A stretch of 64,000 nt of DNA from Klebsormidium nitens. Its lineage: Eukaryota > Plantae > Klebsormidiophyceae. Positions 6,850-30,127 of the stretch are shown one piece after another. The position numbers and the translations under genes are program-made. Within the stretch, counting starts at the first letter, position 1. Each line of letters opens with the position of its first letter. The stretch lies in contig DF237270.1 of the NCBI GenBank assembly GCA_000708835.1, positions 39,004 through 103,003 on the forward strand, in the 5' to 3' direction. Below the pieces are notes generated by a model. The model was not told the origin of the DNA. It made no database searches and saw only the letters and a list, made by a program, of their open reading frames with translations.

Positions 6850-8920
6850 TACTTACCTGGTGGGCCTCGAAAGGGATGCCTGAAACCCCTGGGTAGACTG
6901 TGATTGGGCCAGGGTGACCGGTGTCAAAACTCAAATCTATAAAGTCACTACTTGACCGAGCTGCAGCTGGAATAGGATCAATCAGTCCTAGAATGGGCCT
7001 TTAGAAATCTATTCAGGTCGCGGTCGAGCAGAATTGAGAACCCCAAAATATACTCCCTTACTTTTGCTGTTTTCCTACTACAAAGCGAGACCGATCAGGT
7101 TGCAGATCATGTCACAACTCCTTGGAAACATCCTCCAAAACAGGTTGCTGCAACCCGTCTCTCGTTATCCTAGACTCGGATGGGCGCCATTGCACCTTTC
7201 TTCCTGTTCGAACTTTTGGAAGCATGATGCAGGCCGTGAATTGCGGTTGGTCAGGCCAGAAACTGAGAAAGAAGCTAGCCATGTACCTACATGTGACAAG
7301 CTCTGATTGGTTGCTTGTCTGCATTCTGCAGAAACTATCGACGGTTCGATGAACAGAGTATATGTTACTTTCGGTGATCGACGGTTATAAAAGCCAATGT
7401 TGATGGCCACTCCTGTAACTATGTAATTATGGAGCGTATTACGGTACCCAATCTAGTTTTGAAGAGAAAGTGAAGCCTGAAGGCTGAAGGATGCAAGTTT
7501 GCCTTGCTATTAGTTGAGCACTGCACAGATTGTCTGCTGACGCTCTGGCAGTGGGGGGTTCTGAGGAGACGCCAAGTCTGTGCACCTGAGTGTTGCTGGT
7601 AAAGGTGCAGTTCAAGGGCATGCACGGAAACCCAGCTTGGCATCAAAGCTTAGGGAGAACGCTGCGGTGGTGCTGATGCGCAGGCGGCGTTGAATCAAGC
7701 TCCAGATCATTCAAGGGTTCTGATTCTGGAACGAGCGTTCCATCCTTGAAGGTAAAGTGGTGACTGTGTGATGTGAAATGTAAAAGGGGTTTAGCATTTA
7801 CCATCTCATGTTATATCCAGCAATAGATGCATTGCTTGTCAGAAACGGGTGTTGCTGAACTCTGTTTTTGAAACATCAATGATAAAGTAGCAAACTCGTT
7901 CAAGTGACGCTTTCCGAAGAAGCAATGCATTGGTGGTAATCTGGATGTGCAATGAGTGCAGTTACATCCAATGAGTGCGTTTGTCATGATGGTCATATTC
8001 CAATTTCCGGATCCAGATTGCTCTTGGTGGTGCTTCTTAAGAAGTAGTCCTGTTATTTTGCCCTAGCTTCCAATCGCGGATGGTAGCATAGGCTGTTCTC
8101 GAATAACCCAGCTAAGCTCATGAGTTCTTGCTGATGCTGGTGGTTTTGACTCGGTTGTCCTGTACTGTTTTCTCTCTGTTTCTCGTCTTTGTGAAGTATG
8201 CTTCAATCGTTCTACTAAATGATTGCGACCGGCATAAGAAAAGCTTGGACATTATACTATCAAGCATGATGTATACACTGTCTCTCACTCACACAGGGGT
8301 GCCATCTGCTGCTAGTTGCTAGCAGATGAAGTTCAAATTACCTCTCACCTCAAAGACAAGTTTACCAGGGTTTTTTGACGTTGACCGTGTCAGTGTTGGT
8401 GTGGTGATTGCCCTGCCTCTGGTCGGTCTACGTTCACCCGTACACTGCTCAACGTACGACTCTGATTGCAGGCCATGTATCAGCCAGAAGCGCCCCACTT
8501 AGACGGGCAGCCCGGTGGTCCAGTCAATGCACTCTCGGTGAGTGTAACCAAGGCAATGCGTGTCAGGTTCTCTGGCGAGGATAGAGTGTGGTCCAAGGCA
8601 GATTTTGCGGGAACCAAGTCTTTAGTGGTACCAATGGATTGGAAGGCGGTACTGGCTTTGTATCCCATTGCCCGCTGATTACTCTCAACAACGGGAAGTT
8701 GTCTACTGTTACTGTATTGAGGTCAGTACTGGCTGCGTACCTTAATGTTGCTCTCAACGTTCAACATTACATAAGATCTGTGTCTCTGTATTTGGCAAGG
8801 ATGTTGGGCCGCTTGTTGCTTAGGGGCTCGTTCACAAGGAGCTCTTTGTGTAGCCGCTCCAGCAAGTTGTGTACTCCGAATTTGCCAGTGGTTGACGCAA
8901 CGAGAGGTTGGTGAGAAGGC
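6850..8920 (-). pseudogene. Possible degraded multi-exon gene of unknown family
   Basis: Protein-like fragments bounded by plausible splice sites (NVESNIK|gtacgc near 8740; GYNMRW|gtaaat near 7800 joining YMASFFLSFWPDQPQF near 7290; a strong CAG|GTAAGT at ~6856), interrupted by stops and frameshifts. No family recognised. Confidence 0.2.
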
Positions 8921-9090
8921 TGCAGCAAGGTTAAGGGCACGCAAGCCATCTTAGACGACTTTGCCACATACAGGCCAGCAACAAATCACTGCCACCAGAC
9001 AACTCGCAACAAGAAAACTATCGTTCCAAACCACTTAAACATAGTGCTTCATCGCTAACCCGTCGTCCCAACATACTTCTGTAGGGTGGC

Positions 9091-12000
9091 ATGACTGGGG
9101 GTACAGATCCCGCCCCTTCCCACTTGGGGCCGCAACCCCCGGCAAAGCCATCCCCTCAAGCAGACGGCAGAAAGTGGCCTCCCTATGAGAGGAGGGGCCG
9201 GGAAGAGGAACCGCCAGGGCCCCGCCTTTGGGTGGGGAATTTGTCCCCAAGCGTCACCGAGAAGGAGTTAATGGATCGCTTTGGCCCGTGAGTCCCAGCC
9301 CTGTCTGTCTTTTCTGCTTTGTATCAATGGTTCTTGTTTTTCATGGGTTTTCGTTAAGTCATCAATGCTTTGCCTCAGTGTTCCGTCTAGATCCTGACTT
9401 TCTTGTCGAGGCTGCAGCAACAAACGAAAAACGAAGACAATAGCTTCTGACTGGTCGTTTTTGGAAGAACTTCCCCAAATAATCTTACACTCCACCCACC
9501 TCGTCTATCTTGGTTAATATTATCCCTGTCGTTTAGCTTGATACCGCAATGAATCTTCTGCTGGTGGTTCTAGCCATCCAACAGCAGGCTCGTCTCATCT
9601 GCTCCTACACTTGTCGATCTCTACTTTGCTCTTCACAGCCCGATTTTCTGAACGACACTTTAAGCCAAATGTGCACAGATTGTTTCCTTTTTGACGATCT
9701 AATGTGTTGCATGAGATTTGCTGACCTTCAATGGCCAGTGGCTGACTCTCTTCGTATCCGCTTTCTGTAGGTTCGGGCCTCTGGACAGCGTCTTTGCGCA
9801 CAAGGAGCGCAACTTTGCATACGTCCAGTTTCGTGAAACCCAGGATGCCGAGGCGGCCAAGAACGCCATGAACGGAGCCAGCTTGTATGGGCAGGCGATT
9901 CGTATCGAGTACGCAAAGTCGGTGAGTGAAAACTGTCCGCAATCAAACTTCAATCTCGGAGTTGCTTCAAGCTTTGTATGCCTCTTGTGATTGCTACACA
10001 ATCGCCAAAGGCAGCAGTGTTTTGGGCAGTCAATTTCTTTGCCAGCAATTTCCCTTTGTATTGTTGGGTCGATGAATCGGAGCATTCCCCCACCATTCCA
10101 ACAATCCTTATAATATCGTGCCACTCTCCAGACTGGTGTAATTTTCTTTTACAACAAACGAAGCACTCGTCTATTCCTGAACTTTTTTACCCTTGGTGGT
10201 ACAGGATCCCAATCGGGGCGCGCCCCATCACCGGCCGCCTGCCCGGGAGCCGTATCTCGACAGAGCGCCACCACCGCGGGGTCCCAGACGTCCAGAGGTG
10301 ACTTGTCTTTTCTTCGTGTCCTATTTCTTGTTGGCTGCTGTTACGTCATTCTCACCTGGTTTGTGCACTGCCAAGGTTGCATGTCAACCTTAGGAAGCGA
10401 CGATCCGTTCGAGGAGCTTGCCGTCGCCCGACATGCTTGCAGGGGTATGGCGAGAGCCTGCGGTATTCTAGCTCAAGTGCGTCTTGGCCGTTTTAAACCT
10501 GTCCGGAACATTCCACAGCTGACTTGGTTGTTTCCCTGCTCTGTCGCTCAGGCCTTTGGCACTGGGCGCGAAGGAAACGATCGCCTAACCTGAAGTCAGT
10601 CCCTCGTCTTCCCCTGGTGTAGATTGAGCGCCGCCCCATTGGCAATCAGGGGATCCTTAACCAGATTCTTCCACTTCCCCAGCAAATTAACCTAGAAGTA
10701 AAGTCTTTTTCGTTATGCAGCTCGGGCGCGACCCCGACGACCTGAACGAGCCGAGCCCGTGCCTCTGGATCGGTTTCCCGCCCGACGCCGACATCGACGA
10801 GATGGTGCTGCGCGGCATCTTCGGGCGGCTCGGAGAGATCGACAAGGTTCGGTCGTTCCCGAATCGGCCGTACGCTTTCGTGCAGTTCTTTGACACGGCC
10901 ACGGCGATGCGCGCTCGCGAGCAGGTGGGCCGTCTTTCTCTATCTGTGCTCTATTTTTTGTTCTGTCTGCAAGAGTGTCAGACACAGGAGACACCCGACT
11001 GCAGAACTGCCGGAACTGTTGCACAGCCACCTCTCCGTGCTTACAATTGCGTGTCGATATGTTTAGCTATATCAGCTTCTAGAGAATCACTAGAGGCCTG
11101 AGAAAAGCTACAAATGCTTCAAAAATCAGAGACGCTCACTACAGGAAATTCTTTCCAGATTGTCGACGGGCATGAGGAATTGTGCCAACATAATCAGACT
11201 TTCCCGCAGCTGAGCGCTGAAAGTCGATCCCTGACGTGGACGGAAACGACGATTTCAAGATACTTCCGTTGGCTGAAGACATCGTTTTATGCAGGTGCGC
11301 AAGTATCCAAGCAAGCTGAACGACCCACGTGTCAGCATCCGCTTCAGCAAGCAAGTGATCGGGGAGAAGCACCGGGGCAACGACACAGGATACCGGTGAG
11401 AAACAGCGCTCGGTTTGCTCTCGCACCTGCGGATTGGATTCATCGATAAGCCAGTGATAAGGAGCAGGTCAACCGTCCTTGCACGAGAGTCAGCTATTGA
11501 AAGCAGCCGCGTTCGTGTCTCTGAGCCGCGTTTCTACGCTTGGGAAACGGGCAAATTTGTTTCTATGGAATAACTCGAGGTTACCCTTAGACGGGCTGCT
11601 TCGCCAGTCGTCTTGAGGTAAAACTTAGATAGCATCTGTCGGTTGGTTTTGAAACTGACCGAAACGGTACCTTCTAGAGCCATGCCACCAGCGTCCAATG
11701 CTTTACCCCCTCCCATCTTTCCAACTAGATTTAGACGGCTTTGATCCATCTCCATACTCTTACCCTTTCTTACCTTCGCGCAGCCGACCTCGGGAGTACG
11801 ACTCTGCCGCTTCCGATCCATACTACCCCGACCCGCTCTCCCCCAACAAGCGGGCCCGCACCGGCGGTCCCTACGACAGCGCTCCTGCAGACTATGGCTA
11901 CGGAGCGCCCCCACCGGGGCCTTCCCCCGGGCAACCAGGAGCACCCCCCGGATTTGGCGCCCCGGCCGCTTATGGGGCTTTGGAAGCGCCCGGTTATGCC

Positions 12001-14429
12001 CCCGCCGGGCCGATCATTTGGCACGGGACGCTCGCCAAGTCGGGGACGACCGTGTGCAAGGCGCGGTGCTTTGCGATTGGAAAGGCGCCCGAGGTTCTGA
12101 TGTGAGTGCATCTTTTCTCCGTCGCAGGGTGCTCTTAGTTTGTCGGTCGTTTAGGCGAAAGTTGCTCTGTTCTGAAGGCCCCAGTAGGTAAGAGATTGTC
12201 AAAGGTTTGCTAATATCATTTCCTGTGCTCTTTATGATGAAGGCAATCGGTCCAATTCAGAGTCCTGCGTATCCAAGCTTTTCGACACCAGTGCAAGGAA
12301 ACCAAAGTATTACTGGTGTGTCCTTGCTCCTGAGACGGTGGATTTCCTTGTCGTCAAGCACACGTCTCTTTCCCAAAGAAACATCCACAACTCTCCCTCA
12401 ACTGAACCTTTTTCCCGCGCCCTCACAGCCCCGAGACCGTCAACTGCACTGCGCGCACCGACCTCGACACCCTGGCCCGCCACGTTTACACCATCGCCGA
12501 CTACAACGTCGTCTGCTTCGAGCCGGAGACCGCCGAAGACCAGCCTCCGTACCACGACTTCCTGCGTTACCTGGGCGACAAGCGGCGCGCGGGCGTCGCA
12601 AAGTGGGGGGACGGCGGCGCGACGCTGTTCCTGGTCCCGCCGTCCGACTTCTTGACGGACGTCCTGAAGGTGCCGGGTGCGGACCGACTGCTGGGGGTGG
12701 TGATGACGTTCCGGTCGACGCAGTTTGCGCCCCCGCTGCAGGTGAGAAGCTTCTTCTGATTGCGAGCCTTATCAGTCGAGAAAGTGTCGGATGTCTTACA
12801 GAACGACCAGCTCCTGTGCTGAGAACTCCTGAAGTTGCCATCCTGATGGCACCCCGTTTGCATCTGCGTTGCTCGCCGATTGATGCAACTGTGCGTCATA
12901 GGTTCTGGATCACATGTTTCGAGGTTCGAAGGTACAACCAGTTCTTGGAGGAGCTATACGCATGTTTGCGATACGCCCGAACATTCGTCACTGTTCGACA
13001 TTCAAACCGGCAACCTTTCCAAAAGCTCGTTCCATCCATCCAAGATGCGATTGGGACCGCCCATCCAGAGGAAAAGGCTGGGTTTTTGGGTTTCAGGGTT
13101 TTAGGGTTTTAGGGTTTTAGGGCCTATATCTCACCTTCCAATCGCTTATGCTACTCCAACGTTTTCTTCTCTGCAGGCTCCCCTCCCCCCCCAGCCTCCT
13201 CCAGGTCCCCCCCCCCTCCCGACGCCACAGGACCACCAGCCCCCCCGGGCCCACCCCCACCTCACGCCCAGCCTGCTTATGCGGCCCAGCCCGCTTACCC
13301 CCCCTCCCCCCAGGCCGTCCTTCCGCCCCCCCGGTGCAAAGTCAGGGGGCTGCCCCCGCAAACCCCCTAGCAGGGGTCAACCCTGAAGTGCTCCAGGCGT
13401 TGAGCGCTCTCATCCCCCAGATTCAGTCTCAGGGAGGGGTGCAGGCGGGAAATCCGCTGCTGGGGCTGCTTAGCGCGGCCCTTGCCGGAGGGGGTGCGGC
13501 GGCGGCGAGGGGGTATGGACAATCGCCTGGGACAACCTCTCCTGGTGAGTAGAGGCGGCATCTCTGCGTGTGTTGAATGGGAAGTTCAGATTGAGGAAAG
13601 TCTTCTTTTGTGATTGAGGTTTGGCTTGTGCACCGCAGAGACTTGAGGATCGCAATCTGGTGATGAAGACGTTCTCATGAATGTCGAGTCAATAGCTACA
13701 GAGCATGGCCCGAATGGTTTAAGCACTTGTCTCTAGGAAGAAGCAAGAGGAGCCTTCTACTTTGCTTCGTACAGAACTTCAAAAACCCATAGACCTTTGA
13801 TGAGTACTCTCTTGGCGACACCGATTCGACCTGCGCAGTGTAACTGAAAACTCTATATTGGTGTTACAGGTCCTGCCCCTCCGAGCGGTCCCCGGCCACC
13901 CCCGGGGCAGCCCCCCTATGCTGGAGCACAGATTGGCAGCCAGCCCGGTACAGCCCAACCAGGGTATCAGGCCAGCGCTCCGGCGCGTCCGGCTAGCGAC
14001 GGAACCTATTCCCAGCAGCAGGGAGCGTATTCTCACCAGCCTGAGCAGTACGCTGCGCAGCAGTGGGGGGGTGCAGCGCAGTCAGGAAGCCAGCCCCCCC
14101 AGCAGACGGAACTGCCGACCGATCAGCTAGCCCAACTTACGGCCTATCTTGGGGGCAGTCAGCCAGCCGGGGGCCAAGTTACATCGCAGCAGCAGCCAGC
14201 CCCGGGTGCGGGTGTGAATACGGCCTCTCCAGGGTACGGCAGAGGACAGCAGCCAGGAGAGTGGAATGCTAGACCGGCGCAGCCGGCCGTCCCGGCCCCG
14301 CAGCAGGGGGGTGCCGCACAGGGGCAAGCGGAGGGGTGGGCGCAGGAGGAGAAGCAGTTCGAGCAGCAGCTGCAGCAGGCGTTCCTGCTGTTGCAGCAGA
14401 TCCAGCAGCAACAAGGTCCAGAAAGCTAG
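9091..14429 (+). CDS. FPA: FPA-like Spen-family RNA-binding protein (RRMs, SPOC, Q/P-rich C-terminus)
   Basis: Exons 9091-9287, 9771-9921, 10205-10297, 10721-10924, [linker exon unresolved], ~11784-12101, 12429-12741, 13177-13544, 13870-14429. RRM motifs RLWVGNL/NFAYVQF and CLWIGFP/YAFVQF; SPOC IIWHGTLAKSG...FLRYLGDKRRAGVAK...LFLVPPSDFL; C-terminal QAFLLLQQIQQ. Exon 13177-13544 needs two single-C insertions in C7 runs to stay in frame. Confidence 0.9.
13083..13122. repeat. Interstitial telomere-like tract, 5 octamers
   Basis: TTTTTGGG, TTTCAGGG, then (TTTTAGGG)3 at 13099-13122, inside an FPA intron. Confidence 0.85.
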
Positions 14430-16481
14430 GGGGCGTTTGGCGTCAAGTGTTAGCAAGGTGAGCCGTTCTCTCCAAGCCTCTCGCTTCTCAACTGAATGGC
14501 GCTCTCTGTTCTGTTCTGTGGGAACTCTTCCCGCTTTTGGCGCACGTACATCAGAAGACGGATTTCTGCTGCGCGTTCGTTTGCAAATCGATACGGTAAC
14601 TCTTATTGCGAACAGCAAACGCAAAATGCCTTTCGTACATCTACTTCGATCTCTCCGCGGTCGTTGTCGAATGCACCAAGTATGATGGATTGCTCGGCTG
14701 CGCTCCTAGCCCGTATGCACGCAATCTGCAGCGCTAAGACCGCTACGCTATAATGTCATTTCGCGGATGCAAAGTACCTTGTGTTCTGCATCGTGGCCTA
14801 ACTCACCCCACAGGAGGTTTTGTGCTTTCTGAACTGGTCATGGTGCATCACCAGACAAGAAGGTCTCTTTAGCATGTTCCTTCCCTGCTGAAACTCCGCT
14901 TTTTGATTGTGCACAAAGCGAAGTGATAGCAAGAAGTCGAAAGGATTGTGAAGGGCCATAATTCTGCACAAATTGCTACGTAGCTCACACGCTTTCATGC
15001 GGCACTTCTTCTGGTATGCAGCCCCCAAAGCGATCGCAAGAGATTGGCGATATACCTGCACATATGCACGAAGTTTAGGTCAGATTCGAGCAGGCGACAA
15101 GGGCAACAGCTTGCGGATCCGCAATCTAGGCTGATAAAATGAATAAGTACGCATCATGTGCCTGTCAGAAGCGAGTCAAGACTTCTGCATCGTGCATGCG
15201 CTTAGCTAGTTACATTTCGTCTTACCTAAGGAGCTGCAAATGAGGGTGCTCCGAAGCTCGAAATTGTTGTGGTTGCATCATCATCAACTTCTGCAATCAG
15301 GTCATTGTAACATCATTGCGAGACCGTATGCGACACTCAATCTGAGCGGATCATTAGCAACTTCATGGAGCTTACAATGCTTTCATTGATTCCTCGTTGT
15401 TAAAATGTAATTGACATGGCTGCGCTCAACGTAGTAAATTGGTTGATTGTGACCTCTCCAGAATTTTCTTTGTCCAAGATTGAATCTGTACATCCCCCGT
15501 TCCTATTCTAGGTTGTGGTTTGGAAAGATGGTTCTTGTCGTCGGATTGGCATAGGCTTTTTACGAGTACAAGTACATAGAGCGCGTCGTACATGTCGATG
15601 AGTCATTGAAAATCGTTCTATTGACAAGACATGCAAGATGAAGAGCTAGCCTAGGTGCGTGTAGGATCAGGCAGGCTGAGACTCACTGCATCACTCACTT
15701 AGATATGTGATTCGAGCATGTGCTCAGAAAAACTCTCTAGTGAGCCTAGTTGACTTTTTAAGGAGAAGTCGGAGGTGTGAGCGAGCAGTGGCAATACAAG
15801 TGCACACATGTGAAAGCCTCTTAGGCTATGAGCTTCGCTTTTCACACCGGCCGCGCTGGCAGAAGATTGTCCTCTCGAATTTTACGTCAATCTAACACCG
15901 TGGTCCATAACCGAATAGGATGCATGATGCCGCAGCCACTGTATGGCAAACCAGCTAGTCAAACATACTAGGTTACTATAGGTTTGTTTGCTTGCGAGCG
16001 AGGCATATCGAGAGATGATAAGGCTCCACTCTAGCTGCATGCATCTTTATACAACCGTCTATCATTCATTTAAGCAAATAGCTTAGTAAGTGACTTTCTC
16101 AATTACTTAAAGGTCGTCGGCGTCGATTATACTTGTGTCGATCCAATCTCAGCTATGACGTACCACAGTGTCCACATCTGCATGACACATCAACACTTTT
16201 GCGTAAGAAACCTTCCTATTCATTGCCAGGGATGTACGGCTTTAACTACTTAACCGAGTCGTGAAAACGATCGACCGTCCCGGTACTAAGACTCAAAATG
16301 AAAGCACGAAACCTTATCCATTAAAAGATTACCAGACAAATGCTTACGAAATCACTCGCTGGCGTTTGCAGTTCTTTTCTTGTCGTAGATTGGCAATGTC
16401 CGACTGGTCTGTCGAAAGGAGATTGTTTGGATACGTCTAGGCCAGTAAGCTTACACCAGATTGCAACAGACGACGCAGAAA

Positions 16482-19400
16482 TCAACAGGTTCCTACAATT
16501 GGATCTAGGGAATCGAAATCTACTGGAACCACCACGTCGACCGCCCCTCCATCCCGAGTGAGAAGAGCAACTTCATTCTCCAAGGCACTTGTCTTAACTT
16601 CCGGGTCGTAAATCTCAGCAAAAAGGAGTGGAACGAATCGGAGGCCGGAGTGGGGGGACAGGTTACTGGAAAGTGCCCGATACAGTTCCTGCACATCAGA
16701 AGCTTCTCCTTAATTTAACTTGGCTTGCTCAAATGTGAATGCAACGTGGACCAATCACACGTGTTGGAGGCACTTCCAACAGAGATGTGGTTTAGCGCCC
16801 AATACTTGAGAGACTCGACTGACAACGACCTGGTGACCGAATGTTTACCGAAATCGGACAACGCAAATGAGTCGACAAGCTGGGCTAAATGCTTAAGGTC
16901 AGGATTGCCACTGCACAGGGTTATATTAAGCCTTCCGCTCAGCAAAACTTCGACCGAAGTTGCAAGATCCCTCTTTTATGCGGACCGATGCAAACCAAGA
17001 CCCAGTTTGGTTCGTCAAATTGATGGTGGCTTCACCTTGTCGCGCATTCTGCCCGTTGGAGTTGTTAACAGTGGGTCCCCTGCCAGCAGGCGCGCCCGCA
17101 AATTGATGGCGCGATGTGCCAGATTCAAGACGTCCTGTCATAGTTCAAGAATTGAGGGTCTTGAGAGGTCGGTAAAGCAGGTGGAAGGACGGATCACTGA
17201 ATTGGGAGTCTGGAACGCAGGCCCACAGAGGTTCTTGCAAGAGCTCATGGTCACTTCTTTTTGTTCACGATCAGGCACCTGGGCCCATGGCGCAGAAAGA
17301 AGCCATTTCGGAGTTCGGGCTTCATGCAAAATTATCACTATTCCAGTTGCCAAGCGGTTACTATCAACAAAGCATGACATGACTAACATGACCCATGCTT
17401 CTTGTCTCCACAATTGGGGTCGAAATGTACCATGTACCAAGGAGCCTTCGATGACAAGATTTTTCCTCGAATATTTATTGGCAACAAAATTTAGTTGCAA
17501 AGCTGAGAGGCCATGCATGCTTTGAGTGACCAACTTACTGAAAAAACGACTAGCACTTCTGCGTCTACAGCAATCACACCCGATGCTTTTGAAAGACAAA
17601 AGAGGCTGATAATTTATCAGGCTAGGAGAATAAGATCACAATCCCAACCGATCAGCACATACTCACTTCTAGCGATCAGCACATACTCACTTCTAGCGAT
17701 CAGCACATACTCACTTCTCGAATCGCATGTATCTTTCTCTCTCCCACGACGATGGCCTTCCTTCCGTCCTCGAACCCAATAAGGGCCACTGCGTCGAATT
17801 CCAGTTGTGGATAAAGACGTTTGCCATGCCTCCATGTTGGCAAATGTACCCGGTGCGCCACAGGCATCGGCAGCCCTTGAGCTGCGACCAAACGGTGCAA
17901 AAGTCTCGTCAAGGCCGGGGGACGGGTGGGGTTAGCTTGGTGGTTAGGGTGGGTTACGAGTTAGGGAGTTTAGTTTCTCTGTGCCCGGTAGAACGAGCTT
18001 ATTATCTATTCGTAAGGTATATCTGGTCTGAGCTCTTTGAGGAGAAGATGCGCGATTCTTTTACATTTGCATCAGGAGCAATATTTTGGGTTGGTGTGAA
18101 CGTAGAGCTAGCTATTTATAGTAATGAGACTTACCCAAAGTGCTAGACCCCTTGTCAAGCTGCCCCCCCGGCAGGCAGGGTGCGGTGCCTTCCATCGGGT
18201 CAAAGTCTAAGAATGCCGCTCCTGCGGTGTTGATGAGGCTGAGGAATGCCTAAATGAAAAGAATTGTGAAGTTGAGTTGAGACATTGACCAAGGGAAGCG
18301 GAGATTCAAACCGGGGCCTGCCAATGAAGCAAGGGCAACTACGTTGACAAAGGTTGAGGAGAGAGAAGCTGAGAGCATGTTGGAAAGAAGGGTTTTGGCA
18401 AGGCAAGTCGACCTACAGATTCATCGCGAGTAAGGTTTTCGGACGAGACAGCAAGACTGCGGTCGACTGATGGTCTCGACACTGAATGAGAAAGCTGAAA
18501 GGCGCGCAAAACTGCTTATGACCTCTCAACCAAGGCAGACAAGAGACGCCTGTAAAAATGGTCTCGAGCGGGCAGTGCGACCTGTTTGCATCCTAGTGCC
18601 AGGTCTGTGTATGACTGGCAAGCCTATTAGCTAGGTAATCAGAAACCTGTCCATTGAGGTTTTTTCCCACGTTTCGATTAATGTCTCGAGGACTTCGCAA
18701 TCAACACAAGCTTTGTTCAGCCTTCTGCTTGTGAAACTAGATCTAGTCATGACTAGATCATATGCTCAAGGTTGGGTGTTTATGTTGAACCTCTCCCATT
18801 GTCAGGACCTGAATGCTTTCAAGACCGCACTGGAGCATCTCAATTCGGGCAAAGATGATGGCCTGAAAAAGATAGTAAGGGAGTCGGCTAGTCCCATCAG
18901 CCTCATGCCAGACTTCTCTGGAAGCCCTTTCTTCAAAATGCTTCCGAACTGGATGATCTAGCAAATAAAAGTTGAAGGTCATTGTTGGCAGGTTCCTACC
19001 TGGTTCATAACCGTCTCACTGTCTTGATGTTGATCTTGTTCAAGATGTCTGCGCAGCTTCTCGTATCGACTCACACTCTCATCAGTGGTATACCGTTCAC
19101 CGTTTTTGAGGTCCCAGAACTTGGTCACAAAGACTTTCTCCTCCTCTTCAGTGCTCCCAAGAAGGATGAGGTACTGGCTGTGGCTGATTAGTTTGTCCAG
19201 CCCCTCCTGCCCAAACACCGTCACCGACTTCTCCATGTTTTCCGCCTGCACCAGTGTGATGTTCTTGGGCTGGTTGATAGCAGTTTCCAATCTGGAGCCA
19301 AGGACCTCGCTATCGAGAAAGTGCGCCCACTCTGAAGGTTTCATCTTTACAAACCCTCTCGCTCCCAGAATTTTTAGGTTCTCAAAGGCTGCACTCGCTT

Positions 19401-20490
19401 CGTCCACGACGTTGGCAAACTCGTCGTCAGTCATCGCAGAGTGGACGCGATGAAAAGAGCGCACGTCGAGCTCTGCAGGAGGAAAAGGACACACTGTAAT
19501 GGGTGTCCCAACACTCTGCCACCCTTGAACAACCCAAGCAAGAAAGCCACCTTCTAACCTGCACTTGCTCCTATCAGTTCTCACTTTCAATAACAGCACC
19601 ACATAGTCAATCTGCTTGTGGCCCTAAGGACAATATGCTTCCAAGGGCAAAGCAGAAGCTGACAGTCATCTTGGCATTGAATACTGCTTCTACTTCCCTT
19701 GCTTGGATTGTAGAGAGGTGCTTGCAAAGAGCTTGTTCGAAAATCAGGGCACTTCAAGCACCTGAGCGCCCCTCCTTAGTCTCCTGACTCTCTTTTTAAA
19801 ACTTGCAAGCCTACTGACATATGGTTCACTGTTTGCGTCCAGGGCACGTTTATTTGAGAACTCAGCAGGAATTTGCTCCACATTGACTTTGAGGTTTTTC
19901 AGTGAACCTTTGAAACCAATTCAACATGAAGGCGTGCGAAAACAAAGCCCAGAAACTGCACATACAAGATTTGGAAAAAAAGGTGGAGGTTTTGCAAGAA
20001 ACTTACTACGAAGAAGCCCCTCAATGAAGCAAAATGCCCGCATTATAACTCTGGGCTCAAGACCCCAGTGCTCCATATCGCTGGCGGTCAGCGTATGCAT
20101 CGAGAATCCGGTGATCCCTGCTTTCATCACTTGAGACTTCAACTTGGAGTCTCCAGTTTTTGCTGCGAGGTATTCTCCAATTTCCTCGCTACTCCACAAT
20201 GCTGGGTCAGAATTGTCTGGGTCTGGTGGTGGGGACACGGACCCTGCTGACTTGCAAACGCCCTTGGGAGCTCCTCCTAATTTCTGAAAACTTGCTGGGG
20301 TGTACTGTGATGTAAAAACTGTTGATTGGTGGAAATTGCTTTGCAGGATTTGAGGATGTGCCGAAATCAGCCTCTTTGGCAACAAAGGGCGCGCACTAGT
20401 AGCTGGCCTTTGCGGCTGGCAAGTAGCTCCGGTTGCATTGAGCCTTCCTAGAGCCTCCGTGTGCAGAGACATTACAATTGCAGCAGCCAT
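16482..20490 (-). CDS. Uncharacterised protein: transit-peptide-like N-terminus, SAM domain, ubiquitin-like/beta-grasp segment, PD-(D/E)XK nuclease-like domain
   Basis: Exons 20490-20007, 19472-19020, 18957-(end unresolved), 17881-17715, 17134-17036, 16688-16482; all resolved junctions are phase-compatible GT-AG. SAM: WSSEEIGEYL...GITGFSMHTLTASDMEHWGL. Ubl-like: ITLVQAENMEKSVTVFGQEGLDKLI...VTKFWDLKNGERY. Nuclease: KHFEERA, LEFDAVAL...IVVGERK, DVLNLAHR, FVPLLFAE. Confidence 0.7.
17650..17718. repeat. 24-bp tandem repeat (~2.9 copies) triplicating a splice donor
   Basis: Unit gatcagcacatactcacttctagc. On the minus strand each copy reads AGAA|GTGAGT, giving donors at 17714, 17690 and 17666. Confidence 0.95.
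18740..18759. repeat. Perfect 20-bp palindrome
   Basis: gatctagtcatgactagatc equals its own reverse complement. Confidence 0.9.
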
Positions 20491-21415
20491 TGCCACCCCC
20501 CTCTGGAATGGTGGCGATGTTTTCAGGCCAACTGCAAAGCCTCTAGCAAGCCTGAGGCTGTAGTAGGCTAGGCTCTAGCTAAGCGGCTAGCTTAAATAGC
20601 TCCACTGCATGCCAGTTTCAGTACCTACTCTAGAACTTGAAGCAGTCTGGCATCGACTAAGTTGCGAGGGTTGCGAATCGTTAAGACGTTTGCTGGCCGT
20701 CCGATTGACCCTTTGCCATCCCGCCTACGGCTCGTACCGAGTCCTACGGCAAACTGCAAATCAAGCAGAAGTTAATCTCAATTCGTAAAGAATCTGATGC
20801 ATGATACATATGTAGTCAGATAGTGAAGATAGTAAGAGACATACTACATAAGATTGAGCTTTTGGTGTCTGGACTTCACGGACTGCTTCAGTTCTGCTTC
20901 GACTGCTTGCATGTCTGAGCTGTCTATTCAGGATTCGGAGGCGGTACCAATTCCAATTAAGCTCAATGGCCGCGAGGCGCGAGCGCCTCTGCGCAAGCCA
21001 TTCTTGCACCATGAATCATGAAGGAAAAGTCTTCCGGATCCGCCAGATTAAAGTAGTGAGGTCTGCTGAATAACCATTGCAAGGGGTGCCCAGCTGTCGC
21101 GCTGTATCTCAACGGAGTAGTCGGAGGCAAGATAAGATTTTTACCGGCGCGCAGCAGAGTCGTGAATGCAGAGAAAGAGTGAGTCACCTGAAATTCAAAC
21201 AACGTGGACACTCAAATTGGCGTGCTGGCGCTTTTGCTAGTGAGTCTAAGGGCGCTACAGGGCCTTGTCCCTATAGTAAAAGCAGCGCAGACTCATGACA
21301 TGGAAGCTAGGAGCGGAAGTCCTTTTGGTGCGCTAAGCTCAGCTTTGATTCTCGTCGCGACTTACTGAGGGGGGCGTTTGGCCAGGGGCACGTTTACCCC
21401 CCTGCAGGAGCAGCT

Positions 21416-24400
21416 ATGGCGTACCAGCCACCTGGATTGCCGCCATACAACGGCCCTTCACATTATGGCGATCCGCCCGATGTACCAAATGCGATGCAGG
21501 GGCCCTATTCTCCCCAAGCTGGTTTTTCTCACCCATCCGGGCTACACAGACAGATGGGTTACCAGTCCGCCCCGAGCGCTAACCCAGCCCCCAACCCGGG
21601 TTACAATTACCGAGGGGAGGGGAGTTACCCTCAGCATATCCAACCAACGTCCCCCCAGTTCGGAGCCTCGCAGGGTAGTACTTATTTTGGAGCAAACCGC
21701 CAGCCTTACCAGCAGAATTACCAGCAAACTTTCCAACCTAGGGAGCATCAAGTTCCAGATTACCAGTCACCCCATGCGTGGAACGGCCCATCTCAGCCGT
21801 CCAGTCCTTCCTACCTGCAATCTCAGCCGTCAGTTTCGCCCTACCTGCATTCCCAGCCGTCGATCGCAGCCCCCGACTACAGCCACCCATTTGCGGTCAA
21901 CCTTAACCCCCTGTTTGGAAACGGTCACTCAGCAGGGGTAATGCAGACGCCAGCGAGCCCGCGGCTCAACCCGCTTTACGCTTCCCCTGACCAACAGACC
22001 TTGGTAACCCCTGGTCAGTTCTTCCTTAACCAGTCCCAAACCCCCTTCTTAACCCAGTCCCAAAACCTGGGCCGGCAGCAGACGCTTCCACCCGCTCTAA
22101 CCCGGCCATCGACAGGGGTGCTCCCGAGTTACCTCGGGTCCAGAACGGGGTTGGTTCGTAACCCGCGGGGTAACCAGATGGGGATCGAGCTCGGGCGCGT
22201 CGGATCTGCTGACATGGCGAAATCGACGGTCATGATGCAGCTGCTGGCGGCGCATCACGAATCGCTCGGGCAGAGGGACGCGGTCAGTGCACGGCACGAG
22301 GAACTAGAGCGGCGGCATTACGAGCTCATGAAAGCGCAGGCGAGGCTCGAGGTGGAGCGGGAGGGGGGTGGTTCGCCCAGGCGAAACAGGGGGGGGAGCG
22401 GGAAGAGCCGGAACAGGAAGGATCTGGGAGTGATAGGGTGCTGCATAAGATTGAAACGATGGTCGAGGGACTGCATAAAAGGATAGAGGAGCACAACAAG
22501 ATTTTGACTCGGTCGGAGAAGGGGTCTGCAGAGGAGAAGCAGAGAAAGGACTGGGAGGAGGTGGCAAAACACGAAGAGAGGTGAAAAGGATTCTGTCTTC
22601 GAGAACCGCGCTAGAAAGGGAGTCTGTTTTGTGAGCTGGGTTCTTTCAGGTCGAGAAGCGGTGCTTGGTGTCGACTCGATTGTGTGTGAGGTGAAGTCTA
22701 AAGCCAATGTACAAAATTTGATTGTTGCCGTTCATTACTCTTCAGTAGAGTGACAATTTTGGGGATATGGAGAAATGCGCTTTGTTCCATGCAAAGCTCC
22801 GTCTGATTCTTCCATGTCCTGACAACGGACTATAGTACACGTGCATCAGAAAGGGTGGAAGGCCATAGACTTACGAACGCAGTATTGAAACAAGGAAGGT
22901 TCTCCCAGGATCATGGTCCAGTCATTGGACGGTCTCAGGTATCACCTAAACCTGGTTCTTGAGCACTCCCCTCTCAGGCTCTCGGCTCCGGAGCAACAGT
23001 TTCAACATTACAAAGTGGGCCCTGATTGACGAACCCGTATTTTTAGCGGAAAAAAGGTTGAAGGGCATAGAACTGATTTCGAGTGTACAAGATACAGAAG
23101 AGTCCCCTTTAAGGAGCATTGTTTGATCTTCATGTCGAACCGCCCCATCTTGACTCCTTAAGCCTTCCCTTTCAGGCTCTCGGTTCTGGAGCAACGGCTA
23201 GCGACAGCTCTGCCTGGCCCCCCCCAGTCGTCATCTCACCCGAGCTCTTCCCGCCAAGAACCGGCGACGATTCACCACCGGCCGCAACAGTCCAATGAAT
23301 CTCCCAACTATACCACACCAAAGCTCCCACTAACTGACAGCCCAAAACCAATAAGCGACACGAGATTGAGCCAACCTCACGAACCCCGAACACTGCCCTT
23401 GGATAGAAGCCCACCCCACGAGGGGGGTCCAGAGAACCTCAGGACCGAGCCCCTTGAAAATGGAGCCGGAGTCAGCTCACACGGGAACGGTGCGAATGAA
23501 GATCCCGCCCCCCGAGAGATTCTCGGGGGGCTGGTTATCGCTCCGGGGGGGTGCCGGGAAGCGCAGGACGAGGGGTATGCTGCCCTGTATTACGTGTACA
23601 TGGCGTTTCTGCTTGGACTTGCGGCGTACTGTATGGTATTCGCTGGGGCTCTCAAAGGAGGTGAGGCCCACCGAATTGACCTCTTGCCGGACTTGATAGA
23701 CGCCTTTTGTTTCTGACGACGGCGTGTTTCATCCGTTGGGCGTACTTTTGGATGCCTTGTTCGGTTCTATTGTGATGCTTCGCGGCTGTGAAATGGAAGC
23801 AATACTGGAGGCAGAGGGAAGAAAGTTCAGTTGAATAAGGCAAACGTTTCGGAAGTGTGATTCCTTTAGACCTAGCAGTGATGGCACTTTGCATCCTTAC
23901 ATAGCATCATTCTGCCCTCATGAAGGACCACCACTTCAGAGAGTTGCTTCGCTCTCCCAACGAAACGACTTACAATACAAGCAAGCTTTACGGTTGACGA
24001 AGATTCACAGCAACGCCCACATTCTGGGATACTTTGGCATCCCGCAAAATCATCGTACCAGTGCCGGCTCAGAAACCCCGAGGCGATTATTTCCGTTTCC
24101 GCCATCACAATGATTCCTTTTCCGCCGTCATCCAGCGGATTCCGGTCACCCGGGGGCCTGGTACCGTGAGGCGGGGTACATGCTCGCGAGCGCCGCCGGG
24201 GAGGCCCTGCTTCTGGTCGCGTTTCTGCTCGCGCTCGCGCGCGCGTTCCACGGCGCTGTCGTCATGGTGGTCGTCATCGTGCCGTCGCTGCTGAGCGCCC
24301 TCGGCGCGGGGGTGCTGCTGAGCAGGCGTAAGCAACGGTCAATTTCGACGGCAAAATAGTAGTCAAAAGCACAGAACGTTGAGAACTGGTAGAAGGGAAG

Positions 24401-27400
24401 AGAAAAGAAAGGTCCGCCAACAGGAGCCGGCAATGGGTTGTTTCAGAGCTTCTCGCTCCGTTTTACTCGAAGAGCACACATTAGCATTTGAACTCCGTCT
24501 CCTCCACAATTTTTGTCTATCCGGAAGCGATTCATTAAAGCCCAGCAAAGCGAGATCGAAAAGAAACCGACCCAGGCCCAAACCGCGAACGTCCTTGCTT
24601 CGTGAAACTGGGGACCAGATGCTTCACCTCGATATGTATCACAAATGCGCAGGCAGGACGAAAGCGGGGACCAAACGGGGTGGCCAGATGTCCCGTCTCC
24701 GGTATGTCTGACTTGCTTGTGTTTGCGAAAGCTCGAACTTGTGTGGTTAGATATTTGCCCCAGTCAAAAAGGCCTCCAAATCACGGTAGCATTCAAAACA
24801 GTTCACGAAGGCGATTAGACGAAACCGTCGATACCTTGCCCTTATTCAACGGGTATATGACTAAGGTTCATGAGGTTCTTGAAAGGTTCAATTGTCTTGC
24901 AGAAATGTGGGTGCCCGGAGGACTGATGTGCGGCGTCCTTTTGGCGACCTTGCTGGGCATCTTCCTGGCGCGAAAAGGCCTTTCCTTCGCCGGCGCCACC
25001 TCCGGGGTCGCCTTCGACGCGATGCGCGAGCGGTGGGGGACAGTCATCTTCTGCATCTTTACGGCCATTCTACAGGTGCGAAAAAGAAGCATTCATGGTA
25101 TTCTCATAGTTCTGTTCAGTACCCTTCTTTCCTTGCGGAGGTTTTCCTTGACCGTCTTTTGTCGTGGAATCTCGTTTGTGACGGCATATACAGCGGAACA
25201 CGGGAGCTTTTTAGGGTTGGAATTCCGCCTCCGCGTAAGTCAATGCTAATTAACGACGTTCTTTGTTATTGACTCCTGGCACGAACAAACCTCGTGAGCT
25301 CGCTAGAAACCACTTTTTGTTCCTAACAGATTGCCCTTGACAGCGGGGACTAGGAAATCAATTGCTCACACGGAGCTTCTTTCTCATAATCTGAAGCGGA
25401 CTCCCGTTTATCGCCTTCAGGGTGTCGCCACCCTTTGCCTTCTCATCGAGGTGGTCATCTGCGTGCGGGGCCTTGGCTGGGCTGCGACCATCCCCTACAT
25501 CATGGGCTACCTTTGGACTCTCTCGGTCGCCGCAAACAACGTCCATTTTGTAGTGGGCGGCTCCGTAGCTGCTTGGTGCTCCGCCGAACCCCTCGTAAGC
25601 CTCGCTCAGCCGACGCGCGACCGCGAGCGCGACGCGGCGGGCCGCGTCGCTCCTGGGTCACCACAGCAAAGCCGGAGGTTTAGAGATCCCGCGGGTTCCG
25701 GCCAAACCCAGTCTGGTTTAGCGGTGGTTATCGGAGCCAATGTCGGCGCCAAACCCGAAGGCGAAGCGCCGCGAGTTCAGGGGTGGGTGGAAGCGAAGGG
25801 TTTGGAGGTTTCGGCCGCGCGGCCGCGTCGCAAGGTGGCGGGCACGCCGTCGTTCGTGAAGTGGGCGATCACGAAGTCGGCCGGGAGCGTCTGCGGTGGC
25901 GTCATCGTTGACGTCAGCGTGTGGCTGGTCGACTGGGCGGTGTACATCCTCGGGTAAGAACCTAGTGGCCGACATCTCTTTTCAAAGTCTAGTTATTCTC
26001 ACTCTCTTCTGCGTATTTTTCGCATCGTCAGAAGCCCCTTCGATTTCCAATGGTAGGTTCTAGGGAAGGGAGTGAATCAGCCGCTTGTATGTGGCTGCTT
26101 TGACCCAATCTGGTTACGCACTACCAGCGTTAAAATCAGGGTCCTAAAACGGGCGAAAATGGGCGAATTTGCGAATTTAGGTAAGCGTTTTTGCGGATGT
26201 CCCAGTAAGCCAAAAGCCGGCTCAAATTCGTATGCGAAAAGGAGAAGGACAGCATTCTTTCTGCTTTGCTCGAGTGCAAACAGGACAGTTGTCTGAAATC
26301 GTTGGAGTGAGCCTGCAAAGACACAGGAGGCCGCAATTTTAGCATCTCTTAAAAGGATGAATTTCTTTGCCTTGCAGCTTTTTGTGCTGTTGTTGCACGT
26401 TCTGCTGCGGCGACAGCTCCGCTTTCCACATGCGCGACTGGGCAAAGGAACGGAGCAACAGGTTCGGGCTAGTGCGGTGCGGGATGAGGGGCACGACTTA
26501 CGTCCAGTCAAGCAAGGACGCGTGGCGGTTTGTCAAGGCATCTGCATCTCGTGAGTACCTTGACAGGCTTATCTCGCCAACCATATTCCGCATGGAAACC
26601 AGGCCTCCGAACCTGATTAAAGATTTCGCACGGCTTTGGTAGGAATAAGTGGACGGATTAGTCTCGAAGTTTTGACGAGAGACTAGACTGGACTTCCGAA
26701 GCGTTTCTCTCGTGGTTCTGATTACCTGCAGCACTTCTAAACTATGGGAACTCTCGCTCTTGCGAGCGTGGTCGAGAATTTTGAAACGGCAATGACAATC
26801 TTTTGCCGAAAGGGTAACCCACTTGATGTTCTTAAACACGTGCTAGCATACCATCCTTGTCCACCTTCTACCTTCCAGACGCCATGGCCGATGGTGACGT
26901 CATGCACCACGTGGTGTTCCTGGGCTCCCTGTTCGGCGCGCTGCTCCCCGGGTGTCTCACCGCGCTCTGGGCTAGGAGCAACCACGGGGGGGACAACGAG
27001 CTGGTCATCTTTGCATTTATAGCAGGGTTCCTGGTGAGCACATGAACTAGAGACGGTCGGTTGATGAACGGAGGCCTTTTCAGCAATTTCCGAAGAATGG
27101 TATACATTGCCCAATAATTTAGTATGCGAGGAAGTTGACTTACTGAGGGCAGTTTAAGACGTGTTTAAAAACAAACATGAATCCAGACTCTATAATGTTC
27201 CACCACATAGATGTTTGGGTACAAAACAGAGTCGTCCAGTTTGTATCATGTAGCGAACAGAAGAGTCACAGCGACATTTCATCCCCTGTCCTCTCTAGAT
27301 TTCAAAGGGCAAGTGACGATCATGCAGAATTTTGTTCCCACTTGTAAGGAAACTCAAACTTTCGGGATAATGCCACGTTTCAGTGCTAAAAGACCTCATT

Positions 27401-30127
27401 ACTTTGTGATTACAGCTGGGATACGCTATCGTCCAACCGTTGTTCCACGCGCTGTCCTCCGCCGCGGCCGCCATTCTCCTGTGCGCCATGGAAGATCCGC
27501 TGCAACTGGAGCGGAACCGGAATCCGCTCTGCGCAGAGCTGAAAGCCGCCTGGTCCAAAACTTGGGGCCGCACTCCGTGGGACGACCTCATACTGAGCAC
27601 GCGCGTCGCGGCCGCGTCGCGCGAGTCGGGCGCTATCGCAAATCCTTGGGCGGTCACCGAGATCTGGGGCGCGGAACACGTGGCGCAAGGAGAGGGCGTA
27701 CACGTGGCGCCCAGAGAGGGGAGCGATGACGGCAGTCCGCATCCGGGATCGCGACCAGGGATGGTTCGTGATAATCAAAAGCTCGTGGTTTACGAGCCGG
27801 CAATCTTCCCTGCCCACCCGCCCGCTTATCCGGAACCGCCGGAGTCATTCCGAGTTTCTCAGTCGCAACTAGGATCGGGGTCTTTTACCGGGCAACCGGG
27901 GAAGCACAGCGAAGATTCGACCAAACATGACCAAGGCCAAGTAGAAGAACCGAGCTTTTCGAAGGCGGCTCACAGTCCTTCTAAGCAGGAGGTGGAAAGC
28001 AGGGGCCCTACAAACGGATCGAACCCAATCCGGCCGGATGCCGCTAACCAGAACGGTCCTGGTCAGAATAGCAGTCCAGCGGAAGGAACGGTCGCCTACG
28101 GAAGCGGACGACCAAAGGGTTCTGGCAGTGGCGAGGACATCTTGGCCCGAACGATCGGCAAGATCAAAGGGGTTGGCTTCGAAGAAGAGGACATCAAATG
28201 GGTGAAGGGGGGCATGGATAACGGCGGGCAACTGCCCACGGAAAACTTGACCGGAATGCCGGAACAACAAGTTGGAAAAGCACCGGAAAGACACGTGAGC
28301 GGGGCAGAGAGTCTTATGTCGAGAACAAGCGCAAAGGAGGGCGAAGAGAAGGGGAGTACGCCACAAAAGGCAGAAGCATACGGAAGCGCAGAGCGGAACG
28401 GAACGCGAGGACCGGTGCCGAGCGGGACGGCTGCGGCCAGCGTTCCGTCCGGGGCCCGCGCAACGGAAAAGTCTGAACCGCAAGAAGCGAAAGTGAAGGG
28501 AACGACTGGAGGGACCGTTCAGGGACCCCAATCTGTTAGCAGTTTTGGGGCCAGCGTTCCGTCAGGGGCCAGCGGAACGGAAAAGCTTGAATCGCGAAGA
28601 GCGGAAGCCAAGGGAACGACGAGGGGGACCGTTCAGGGACCCCAATCTGGTGAGAACTCTGGGGCCAGCATTCCGTCAGGGGCAAGCGCAACGGAAAAGC
28701 TTGAGACGCGAGGAGCGGAAGCGAAGGCGGCGACTGGGGGGACCGTTCGAGGACCGCAGACTGACAGGACAGCTGTAGGCAGCGTTCCGTCAGGCGCAAG
28801 CGCAGCGGAAAGGTCTGGACCGCGAGGAGCGGAAGCCAAGGGAACGACGAGGGAGACCGTTCAGGGACCCCAATTTGTTGGGACCTCTGGGGCCAGCGCA
28901 ACGGAAATGTCCGGGACGCCAGGAGCGGAAGCGAAGGGAGCGACCGCAGGAAACGTTCGGGGACCCCAGACTGACAGGACAGCTGGAGGCAGCGTTCCGT
29001 CAGGCGGAAGCACAACGGAAAAGTCTGAAACGCGAGGAGCGGAAGCAAAAGGAGCGACCGCGGGATCAGTTCGGGGACCGAACAGTGACAGCAAACTGCC
29101 GCTCGTAATTGACGGGAACGTGAGAGGAACAGCAGGGACGGGCGGGCAATCTGGGACGGAACCGAGCAGAATTGCAAGATCTGGACCGGAAAGGGGTGAA
29201 AAGACCGGAAAAGGGGTTTCGTCTGTGATGGATGCGGAGGGAAGTAGGACGGCGCAAAAGGGTGGCACAGCGGCAGTGCGCGAAGTTGACAGTAGAAGCG
29301 GGAGCGGAGCCCAGACCGGATTTCAGACCGGGAGCGGAACAACTAGCAGCGGCGGAACTTCCGAGAGCAAGGGTAACCAGGGGGAAGGGCCTTCGAGCGT
29401 CAGCGGGAAGGAAGGGGCGAAGAGCGCTGGAAATGTGAAGGCTGGCTCAAGGGAAAACGAGCCAGAACGGAACTCTGGGAAGGAAAGCGGAAGCGGAAAG
29501 TCTGGTGTGGCCGAAGCTGCACCAGTTGCGAGGGCAGGAACCGGGGGGTCAAGTTTCAAGGTGAAAGACGCGCTCAAAGACGAGAGTGCGCGGGAAGACA
29601 AGGGCAACGGTGGGGGCGTTGACCAAAGTCGAAAGCCGGGGAGCGGATCAGCGGATACCGTTCCTTCCGCCGGAATGAATCAGCCCATCCTTGGGACAGG
29701 GCCTAAGAGCGCGGAAAACGGAAAAGCAGGACTCCCTGGCGTCCAACCAACCGTAACGGAAGCATTGAAGGAGGGCTCGATTTCCAAAAAGATCGACGAT
29801 TCCAATCCAAACGGCAAGCCGAGTCTGCAAAAGGGCTCTAGCAAAGTCGAAGAGTCGCCGCGTAAGAATCTGCCGGACGTAAGCAAGGTGGAGAAAGTAA
29901 CGGGTCTTGGCAAGGAGGACGAGGTGCCACGTGGCAAGCTGGCGGGGCAAAAGGACGAAGTGACGCCCCAGGGGACACGTGTCAAGCTGGCAGACCTGCA
30001 GCCGGTCCGGCCCAAAGGCGTTCCGCTGGAGGGCGGTTCCGTCCAAGGCGCTTTGCAGCCGGAAAAGGATGCGGCTCCGTTGAAGGCTGGGCCGAAGGAC
30101 GATGTTCCACGTAATAATGCGAAGTAG
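21416..30127 (+). CDS. Choline transporter-like (CTL/SLC44/PNS1 family) membrane protein with very long N- and C-terminal low-complexity extensions (~1860 aa)
   Basis: Exons 21416-22580 (one G missing in a G6 or G8 run near 22363-22396), 23176-23660, 24136-24327, 24903-25075, 25421-25953, 26378-26550, 26879-27033, 27416-30127, all phase-compatible. CTL hallmarks: YLWTLSVAANNVHFVVGGSVAAW, KWAITKSAGSVCGG, NRFGLVRCGMRGTTYVQSSKDAW, SSAAAAILLCAMEDP. Confidence 0.85.
22965..23197. repeat. Echo of the CTL exon 2 acceptor
   Basis: ccctctcag|gctctcggctccggagcaac (~22969) duplicates the real ccctttcag|gctctcggttctggagcaac (23167-23195). Confidence 0.8.
28435..29080 (+). repeat. Coding tandem repeat, 114 bp (38 aa) x ~5.5
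   Basis: cagc(g/a)ttccgtc recurs at 28438, 28552, 28666, 28780 and 28990, with one internally deleted copy between. Consensus ASVPSGASATEKSETRGAEAKGTTGGTVQGPQ. Confidence 0.95.

Follow-up and report, generated by a model that had tools for sequence, protein, structure and literature searches.

Within a 64,000-nucleotide window of Klebsormidium nitens contig DF237270.1 (the whole stretch of DNA that was analyzed), KFL_003210090 is a real, six-exon, transcribed, protein-coding gene. Its 514-residue product consists of a leader (~95 residues), a SAM domain, a family-specific domain (~160 residues), a variable linker, and a C-terminal alpha/beta domain (~150 residues) that carries a D-x17-E-x-K motif (D387 and E405-R-K407). 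We read the whole as a metal-dependent endonuclease of Mrr/NERD-like type that assembles through its SAM domain, probably enters an organelle, and serves a dispensable role in surveillance or conflict, and we rate this reading at about even chances.

On this reading, the C-terminal domain, of the Mrr/NERD type within the PD-(D/E)xK fold, would cleave nucleic acid, using a divalent metal bound by D387, E405, and K407. Self-association through the SAM domain would bring nuclease domains together, and the middle domain would select the substrate or regulate cutting. The leader would be cleaved upon import into an organelle, the plastid being a more likely destination than the mitochondrion, and the protein would serve an accessory role such as surveillance, defense, or conflict.

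Transcript structure and domain layout

Contigs from four public runs, belonging to four studies, were aligned to window positions 15800-21300. The runs were presumed to be transcriptomes by their size (34 to 42 million letters each, containing no more than 46% of the sampled words of the locus). The contigs define five exon joints, all GT..AG on the minus strand (CT..AC on the plus strand), and single contigs of 1835 nucleotides (nt) (X1) and 1852 nt (X9) span all six exons. Spliced together, the exons form a single 514-codon reading frame that opens with the ATG at 20490 and closes with the stop at 16484-16482. A preliminary description made from the letters of the window had proposed one cryptic multi-exon gene uniting SAM and nuclease-motif exons, with its start at 20490 and its end at 16482; the transcripts bear out this proposal, and both boundaries are exact.

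All exons lie on the minus strand. Exon 1 (20007-20587) is covered without a break from 20007 up to contig ends at 20583-20587; it holds a 97-nt 5′ untranslated region (UTR) and codons 1-161, which encode the leader and all but the last residues of the SAM domain. Because the 5′ UTR has an in-frame stop upstream of the ATG at 20490 and no other ATG, M1 is the first AUG. Intron 1 (19473-20006; 534 nt, GT..AG), whose joint is present in 3 runs, is followed by exon 2 (19000-19472), which encodes the middle domain (residues 162-319) and includes the DLKNGERY segment reported in the preliminary description. Beyond intron 2 (18250-18999; 750 nt; joint also in 3 runs) lies exon 3 (18135-18249; 115 nt), a poorly conserved linker of residues 320-357 with joints on either side in 3 to 4 runs. 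Intron 3 (17882-18134; 253 nt, GT..AG) leads to exon 4 (17715-17881; residues 358-413), with the GxPMPVxxRxHL..W motif, D387 (17795-17793), and E405-R-K407 (17741-17733); the E-F-D (17801-17793) and E-R-K described earlier are both exactly where they had been placed. After intron 4 (17135-17714; 580 nt), exon 5 (17036-17134; residues 414-446; joints in 4 runs) encodes the helix that follows ExK (DVLNLAHRAINLRARLLAGDPLLTTPT). Intron 5 (16689-17035; 347 nt) precedes exon 6 (16268-16688), which comprises residues 447-514 (RFVPLLFAE...GGAVDVVVP), the stop codon, and the 3′ UTR. Low-depth contigs run on below 16268 (window 15960-16382), and the 3′ UTR may reach ~15960.

With respect to the exon set, the preliminary description was right to splice the SAM and motif exons together and wrong to include an exon starting near 18957, which falls in intron 2; it also missed the real exon 3. 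The junction from 18957 to 17881, which it had singled out for checking against RNA, is settled by exon 3 (18249-18135). The FEE helix that it listed among the nuclease motifs did not survive, as HFEER comes from an open reading frame (ORF) at 18758-18982 inside intron 2 and occurs in no transcript contig. A contrast in G+C content at third codon positions (GC3) with the neighboring genes had also been drawn, and it is weak: GC3 is 0.56 in this gene versus 0.46 to 0.75 in the other long ORFs of the window.

Intron 3 has no counterpart in the syntenic orthologue carried by the Logan contig L002, in which exons 3 and 4 are contiguous (L002 positions 9049-9303), and it is also missing from the paralogue loci L001, L003, and L006. 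These comparisons are most simply explained by a recent gain of the intron in the K. nitens copy. About 35 to 40 nt inside it (17915-17956) also occur in unrelated transcript contigs. At intron 4, a 24-nt unit starting at the donor (GTGAGTATG...) is present in three tandem copies (17720-17649); the first of the three donors is used in every transcript contig, and donors 2 and 3 would add an in-frame TGA. Antisense to exon 5 and introns 4 and 5 runs a 268-codon open frame (16719-17522, plus strand) that is long for chance. It has no Pfam match, the introns are not conserved in L002, and the frame is probably non-coding.

The public record conceals this layout. The public protein GAQ86933.1 (“hypothetical protein”; here P0001) is identical to residues 122-514 of the new model, and the public model of KFL_003210090 has the same exons 2 to 6 and a start placed 121 residues too late, inside the SAM domain. 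The public model of the second K. nitens family member, KFL_008310010 (P0008; paralogue B), likewise begins inside its SAM domain; at its locus (L006, DF237780.1; 4600-9171 and 13214-14171), an upstream MAAASVSF... leader and the first half of the SAM domain are open in frame. Both K. nitens family members are therefore misannotated, their models opening within the SAM domain, and the true architecture does not show in public databases. A literature search found no mention of the gene identifiers in papers. For the window gene, the database queries described below were P0001 (residues 122-514) and exon pieces.

The leader (20206-20490; residues 1-95, MAAAIVMSL...) contains 12 A, 11 S, 11 P, and 7 T (S, T, A, and P together, 41/95) and 8 basic residues. 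Its acidic residues are one Glu (Glu12) and three Asp, and all three Asp come after residue 89, which leaves Glu12 as the sole acidic residue before position 90. The nearly acid-free, S/T/A/P-rich N terminus noted in the preliminary description is therefore present. An MA start, a richness in hydroxylated residues and alanine, and a near absence of acid match the composition of chloroplast transit peptides, which is a description and not proof of import; from this composition we infer that the leader may direct import. The leader is 52% identical to that of the L002 orthologue, and the leader of paralogue B is of comparable length and precedes the SAM domain both at the K. nitens locus L006 and in the metagenomic relative L001.

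The SAM domain (20007-20205; residues ~96-162, W99...GITG...WGLEP...IEGLL), whose last residues run into exon 2, had been recognized earlier with its W at 20196, and W99 does lie at 20196-20194. A 73-residue piece scanned alone matches Pfam SAM_2 (PF07647) with 22.1 bits (E = 1.8e-4), above the cut-off of 20.5. Longer pieces score 19.3 to 19.7 bits, just under the threshold, and SAM_2 matches at E ≤ 0.1 in two of the five family members. Five loci retain the W...G(I/L)xG...WG(L)... pattern, and no part of the gene is more constrained than this domain, at a ratio of nonsynonymous to synonymous divergence (dN/dS) of 0.19. We regard the SAM assignment as credible but marginal; the borderline score and the failure of the family profile to retrieve any SAM chain from the PDB both tell against the preferred reading.

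The middle domain ends in a conserved helix (DESVSRYEKLRRHLE). It has no match in Pfam, PDB, PHROGs, NCBIfam, or PADLOC, and a search of the ESM Atlas with residues 42-198 of P0001 returned no usable feature match and heterogeneous structure rows with template modeling (TM) scores of <0.4. In a low-confidence AlphaFold2 model, with a predicted local distance difference test (pLDDT) score of 40.6, a helical part is followed by a beta-beta-alpha-beta-beta unit, a pattern that would fit a beta-grasp without constituting evidence for it. The ubiquitin-like beta-grasp domain put forward in the preliminary description found no support, as neither sequence nor structure gave a match in Pfam, PDB, or the Atlas. 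Within the gene, dN/dS peaks at 0.64 in the exon 3 linker that follows.

Distribution and evolution of the family

With the exon 2 domain as query, an exhaustive HMMER search of 1.84 billion representative proteins gave seven matches, of which six were true. Of these, P0001 is the window's own protein, P0002 clusters with P0008 (paralogue B), which shows 47% identity across 376 residues, and P0003 to P0006 are pieces of exon size drawn from Logan and JGI contigs. The seventh, P0007, is a bacterial repeat protein and was discarded as spurious. A word search with the exon 2 domain found nothing, its length filter shutting out full-length relatives, and word and profile searches with the C-terminal region recovered nothing beyond the gene itself and fragments of L001 and L002 exons. 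Pattern scans of metagenome, prokaryotic-genome, and viral contigs yielded no relatives beyond exon fragments of known loci, and tblastn against plasmids and phages gave no matches or chance matches only.

As far as these collections show, the family appears to be confined to Klebsormidium-type algae. There are two members in the K. nitens protein set, and further lineages (L003 and L004/L005) are 47 to 53% identical to the window gene; paralogue lineages are patchily present across Klebsormidium samples. These searches supply the paralogue count and taxonomic range that the preliminary description had left to be checked. They also agree with its statement that it knew of no characterized protein of this architecture, as neither the 1.84 billion-protein HMMER search nor the word and profile searches found a characterized relative.

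Because L002 (a Logan contig of SRR23617307) is collinear with window positions 11705-27500, it carries the orthologue from a related species. Between the window and L002, five flanking ORFs are 83 to 91% identical, with dN of 0.05 to 0.10, dS of 0.30 to 0.45, and dN/dS of 0.11 to 0.30. The gene itself is 50 to 64% identical over most aligned pieces, with dN of 0.27, dS of 0.75, and dN/dS of 0.36, and by dN its rate of change is three to five times that of its neighbors in the same two genomes. A sixth flanking ORF (12207-13112), with a dN/dS of 1.5, may be non-coding in that frame and was left out. For paralogue B and its 95%-identical relative, dN/dS is 0.50. The L002 copy (6824-10245) has a 1-nt insertion in exon 1 (~7172) and a net 4-nt deletion in exon 2 (~7896-7901), both frame-shifting, and reads E-G-T in place of ExK. 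Because of the two frameshifts and the E-G-T, this copy is probably a pseudogene, unless the indels are assembly errors. The pattern is that of an accessory, fast-turning-over family and not of a core organelle maintenance factor. Given its apparent restriction to Klebsormidium, its rapid evolution, and its probable decay in a sister species, the family would have an accessory rather than a housekeeping function.

The restriction of the family to one lineage, its rapid evolution, the apparent frameshifts and altered motif of the L002 orthologue, and the patchiness of the paralogue lineages would also suit a protein with the same domains that remains cytosolic or nuclear and works as a conflict or immune effector. 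SAM assembly would then activate the nuclease against invading or selfish DNA or RNA, and the leader would be a disordered region. However, both paralogues keep a ~95-residue, acid-poor MAAA... leader, which is a better fit to a transit peptide than to random disorder. There is also no PADLOC match, and no partner sensor gene is evident beside the gene. We consider a cytosolic or nuclear effector unlikely, though it stands first among the alternatives. Within our preferred reading of an imported, SAM-assembled endonuclease, a more specific proposal is that of a Klebsormidium-specific, organelle-resident (plastid or mitochondrion), SAM-assembled, restriction-like surveillance or conflict system evolving by birth and death, with paralogue turnover and decay in the sister species. 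We know of no such system characterized in the plant lineage, and we hold this proposal to be improbable in that specific form.

The C-terminal domain and its genomic setting

The motif of the C-terminal domain recurs as EVD...EAK in paralogue B and as ELD...EGK in lineage C (L003). An alignment of four lineages keeps GxP..V..RxHL..W, then D387, and then E405, with K407 in three of the four; the lysine is kept in all three copies that are free of frameshifts. The exon 5 helix after ExK is conserved in paralogue B, and the exon 6 segment is 53 to 64% identical in L001 and L002. The motif region of exon 4 is a candidate for the beta2 and beta3 strands of a PD-(D/E)xK core. When P0001 and P0008 were used separately to query the ESM Atlas, every named family among the feature neighbors listed was of the PD-(D/E)xK type (DUF8196, NERD, Hjc, and Mrr_cat), and in the Atlas's own models 128 to 166 C-terminal-side residues align to DUF8196, DUF3782, NERD, and Mrr_cat clusters with TM scores by target of 0.5 to 0.74. 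Both low-confidence AlphaFold2 models put D387 close to where one strand begins and ExK immediately beyond the following strand, with a long helix after it. The nuclease motifs named in the preliminary description have thus held in one respect, as D...ExK is conserved in paralogue B and lineage C and the Atlas leads point to PD-(D/E)xK, and have failed in another, as no family was matched by sequence or profile.

Several points count against the nuclease reading. The Atlas scores, 0.77 to 0.84, fall in the range that the tool itself labels “a lead only”, and the ESM models behind these leads have mean pLDDT values of 0.54 and 0.48. AlphaFold2 reached a pLDDT of only 36.6 for the C-terminal domain (7-row alignment) and 40.6 for P0001 (13 rows), and searches with these models by Foldseek against the PDB and in the Atlas returned noise only and were discarded. 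The C-terminal domain matched no nuclease family in Pfam, PDB (phmmer and profile), PHROGs, NCBIfam, or PADLOC, and hhalign gave a probability of 0.4% for the family profile against E. coli Mrr. The poorly conserved linker of ~40 residues between the candidate first helix and the strands is unusual for the fold. Taking these points together with the motif conservation and the model comparisons, we consider it fairly likely that the domain has the PD-(D/E)xK fold and put its being an active nuclease at slightly under an even chance.

If the domain is not an active nuclease, it could have another alpha/beta fold or be a degenerate PD-(D/E)xK module that binds nucleic acid or protein, and D...ExK would not be catalytic. 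Such a view accounts readily for the lack of nuclease-family homology by sequence or profile and for the unusable AlphaFold2 models; D-x(n)-E-x-K is, moreover, a short pattern, and its K is lost in L002. It sits less well with the invariance of D and E and the retention of K in every copy without frameshifts, or with the independent retrieval of the same fold families in the ESM Atlas by two paralogues that are 47% identical. The K-less L002 copy is also the frameshifted one, which fits decay rather than tolerated loss. We place this possibility next in rank and likewise consider it unlikely.

The neighbors of the gene are ordinary: an RRM protein, a choline-transporter-like protein, and a divergently transcribed P/Q-rich protein. 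There are no flanking repeats of substance at the locus, inverted or direct, and no second copy of the gene within the window. Because of these ordinary neighbors and the absence of meaningful repeats and of a second copy, the gene does not belong to a mobile element here. Elsewhere, 4 kb downstream of paralogue B on a 30-kb scaffold, lies a 1534-residue gene with a match to Herpes_ori_bp (PF02399). This neighbor would favor descent from a domesticated or still selfish mobile element, for example as the nuclease partner gene of a SAM-bearing transposon family, an origin that we regard as very improbable given the collinearity of the window copy with L002 across ~16 kb of ordinary genes, the lack of substantial terminal repeats or another copy in the window, and the presence of just two paralogues in the K. 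nitens protein set. Farther along the window, an 895-codon ORF (27440-30127, plus strand) lies in a strong purine skew of the plus strand; at 28001-30000 the AT skew is 0.43 and the GC skew is 0.20 to 0.26.

Comparison with known systems

If the preferred reading of an organelle-imported, SAM-assembled endonuclease is correct, the gene would represent a new eukaryotic architecture for the restriction-endonuclease fold, in which a SAM domain, an orphan domain, and an Mrr/NERD-like nuclease stand behind a transit-peptide-like leader. Its host, a streptophyte alga, stands near the point at which land plants arose, and the gene would offer a handle on lineage-specific nucleic acid surveillance, possibly within organelles. 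If the fold assignment fails, KFL_003210090 would simply be a fast-evolving orphan gene.

Crinkler (CRN/CR) effectors, with which the preliminary description had drawn an analogy, resemble the Klebsormidium protein in being modular, in ending in a putative restriction-like domain, and in forming a fast-evolving family. However, no tested feature favored the analogy. A direct reading of the 514 residues shows no LxLFLAK-type motif or secretion signal, the paralogue N terminus is not hydrophobic, a ubiquitin-like header has no support, and the host here is a free-living alga.

Organellar RAP-domain and FASTK-type proteins combine a transit peptide with a PD-(D/E)xK-like RNA-processing module. 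The Klebsormidium protein is similarly nucleus encoded, with a transit-peptide-like leader and a putative small C-terminal restriction-like module; unlike them, it has no Pfam RAP match and no helical-repeat tract and has a SAM domain instead. In SARM1, a SAM oligomer scaffolds an enzymatic domain that is activated by assembly. The Klebsormidium protein would share the position of the SAM domain, N-terminal to a putative effector enzyme, and by analogy activation by assembly is proposed for it, but its enzymatic domain is nuclease-like rather than TIR, it has no ARM repeats, and its SAM domain is single rather than a tandem pair.

A further close comparison is with the Mrr, NERD, Hjc, and DUF8196 nucleases (PF04471, PF08378, PF01870, and PF26618). 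The Klebsormidium protein differs from these in having no detectable sequence or profile similarity to them and in the variable linker of ~40 residues ahead of its strands, and its gene is eukaryotic and intron-bearing, with a SAM domain and a long leader joined to the nuclease-like part. It resembles them in the usual spacing of D...(E)xK, in two consecutive predicted strands followed by a long helix, and in a domain length of ~150 residues, and the Atlas feature and structure neighbors of both paralogues belong to these families. Type IV restriction enzymes place an N-terminal accessory domain before a C-terminal catalytic domain, and the candidate protein would share this accessory-then-catalytic layout.

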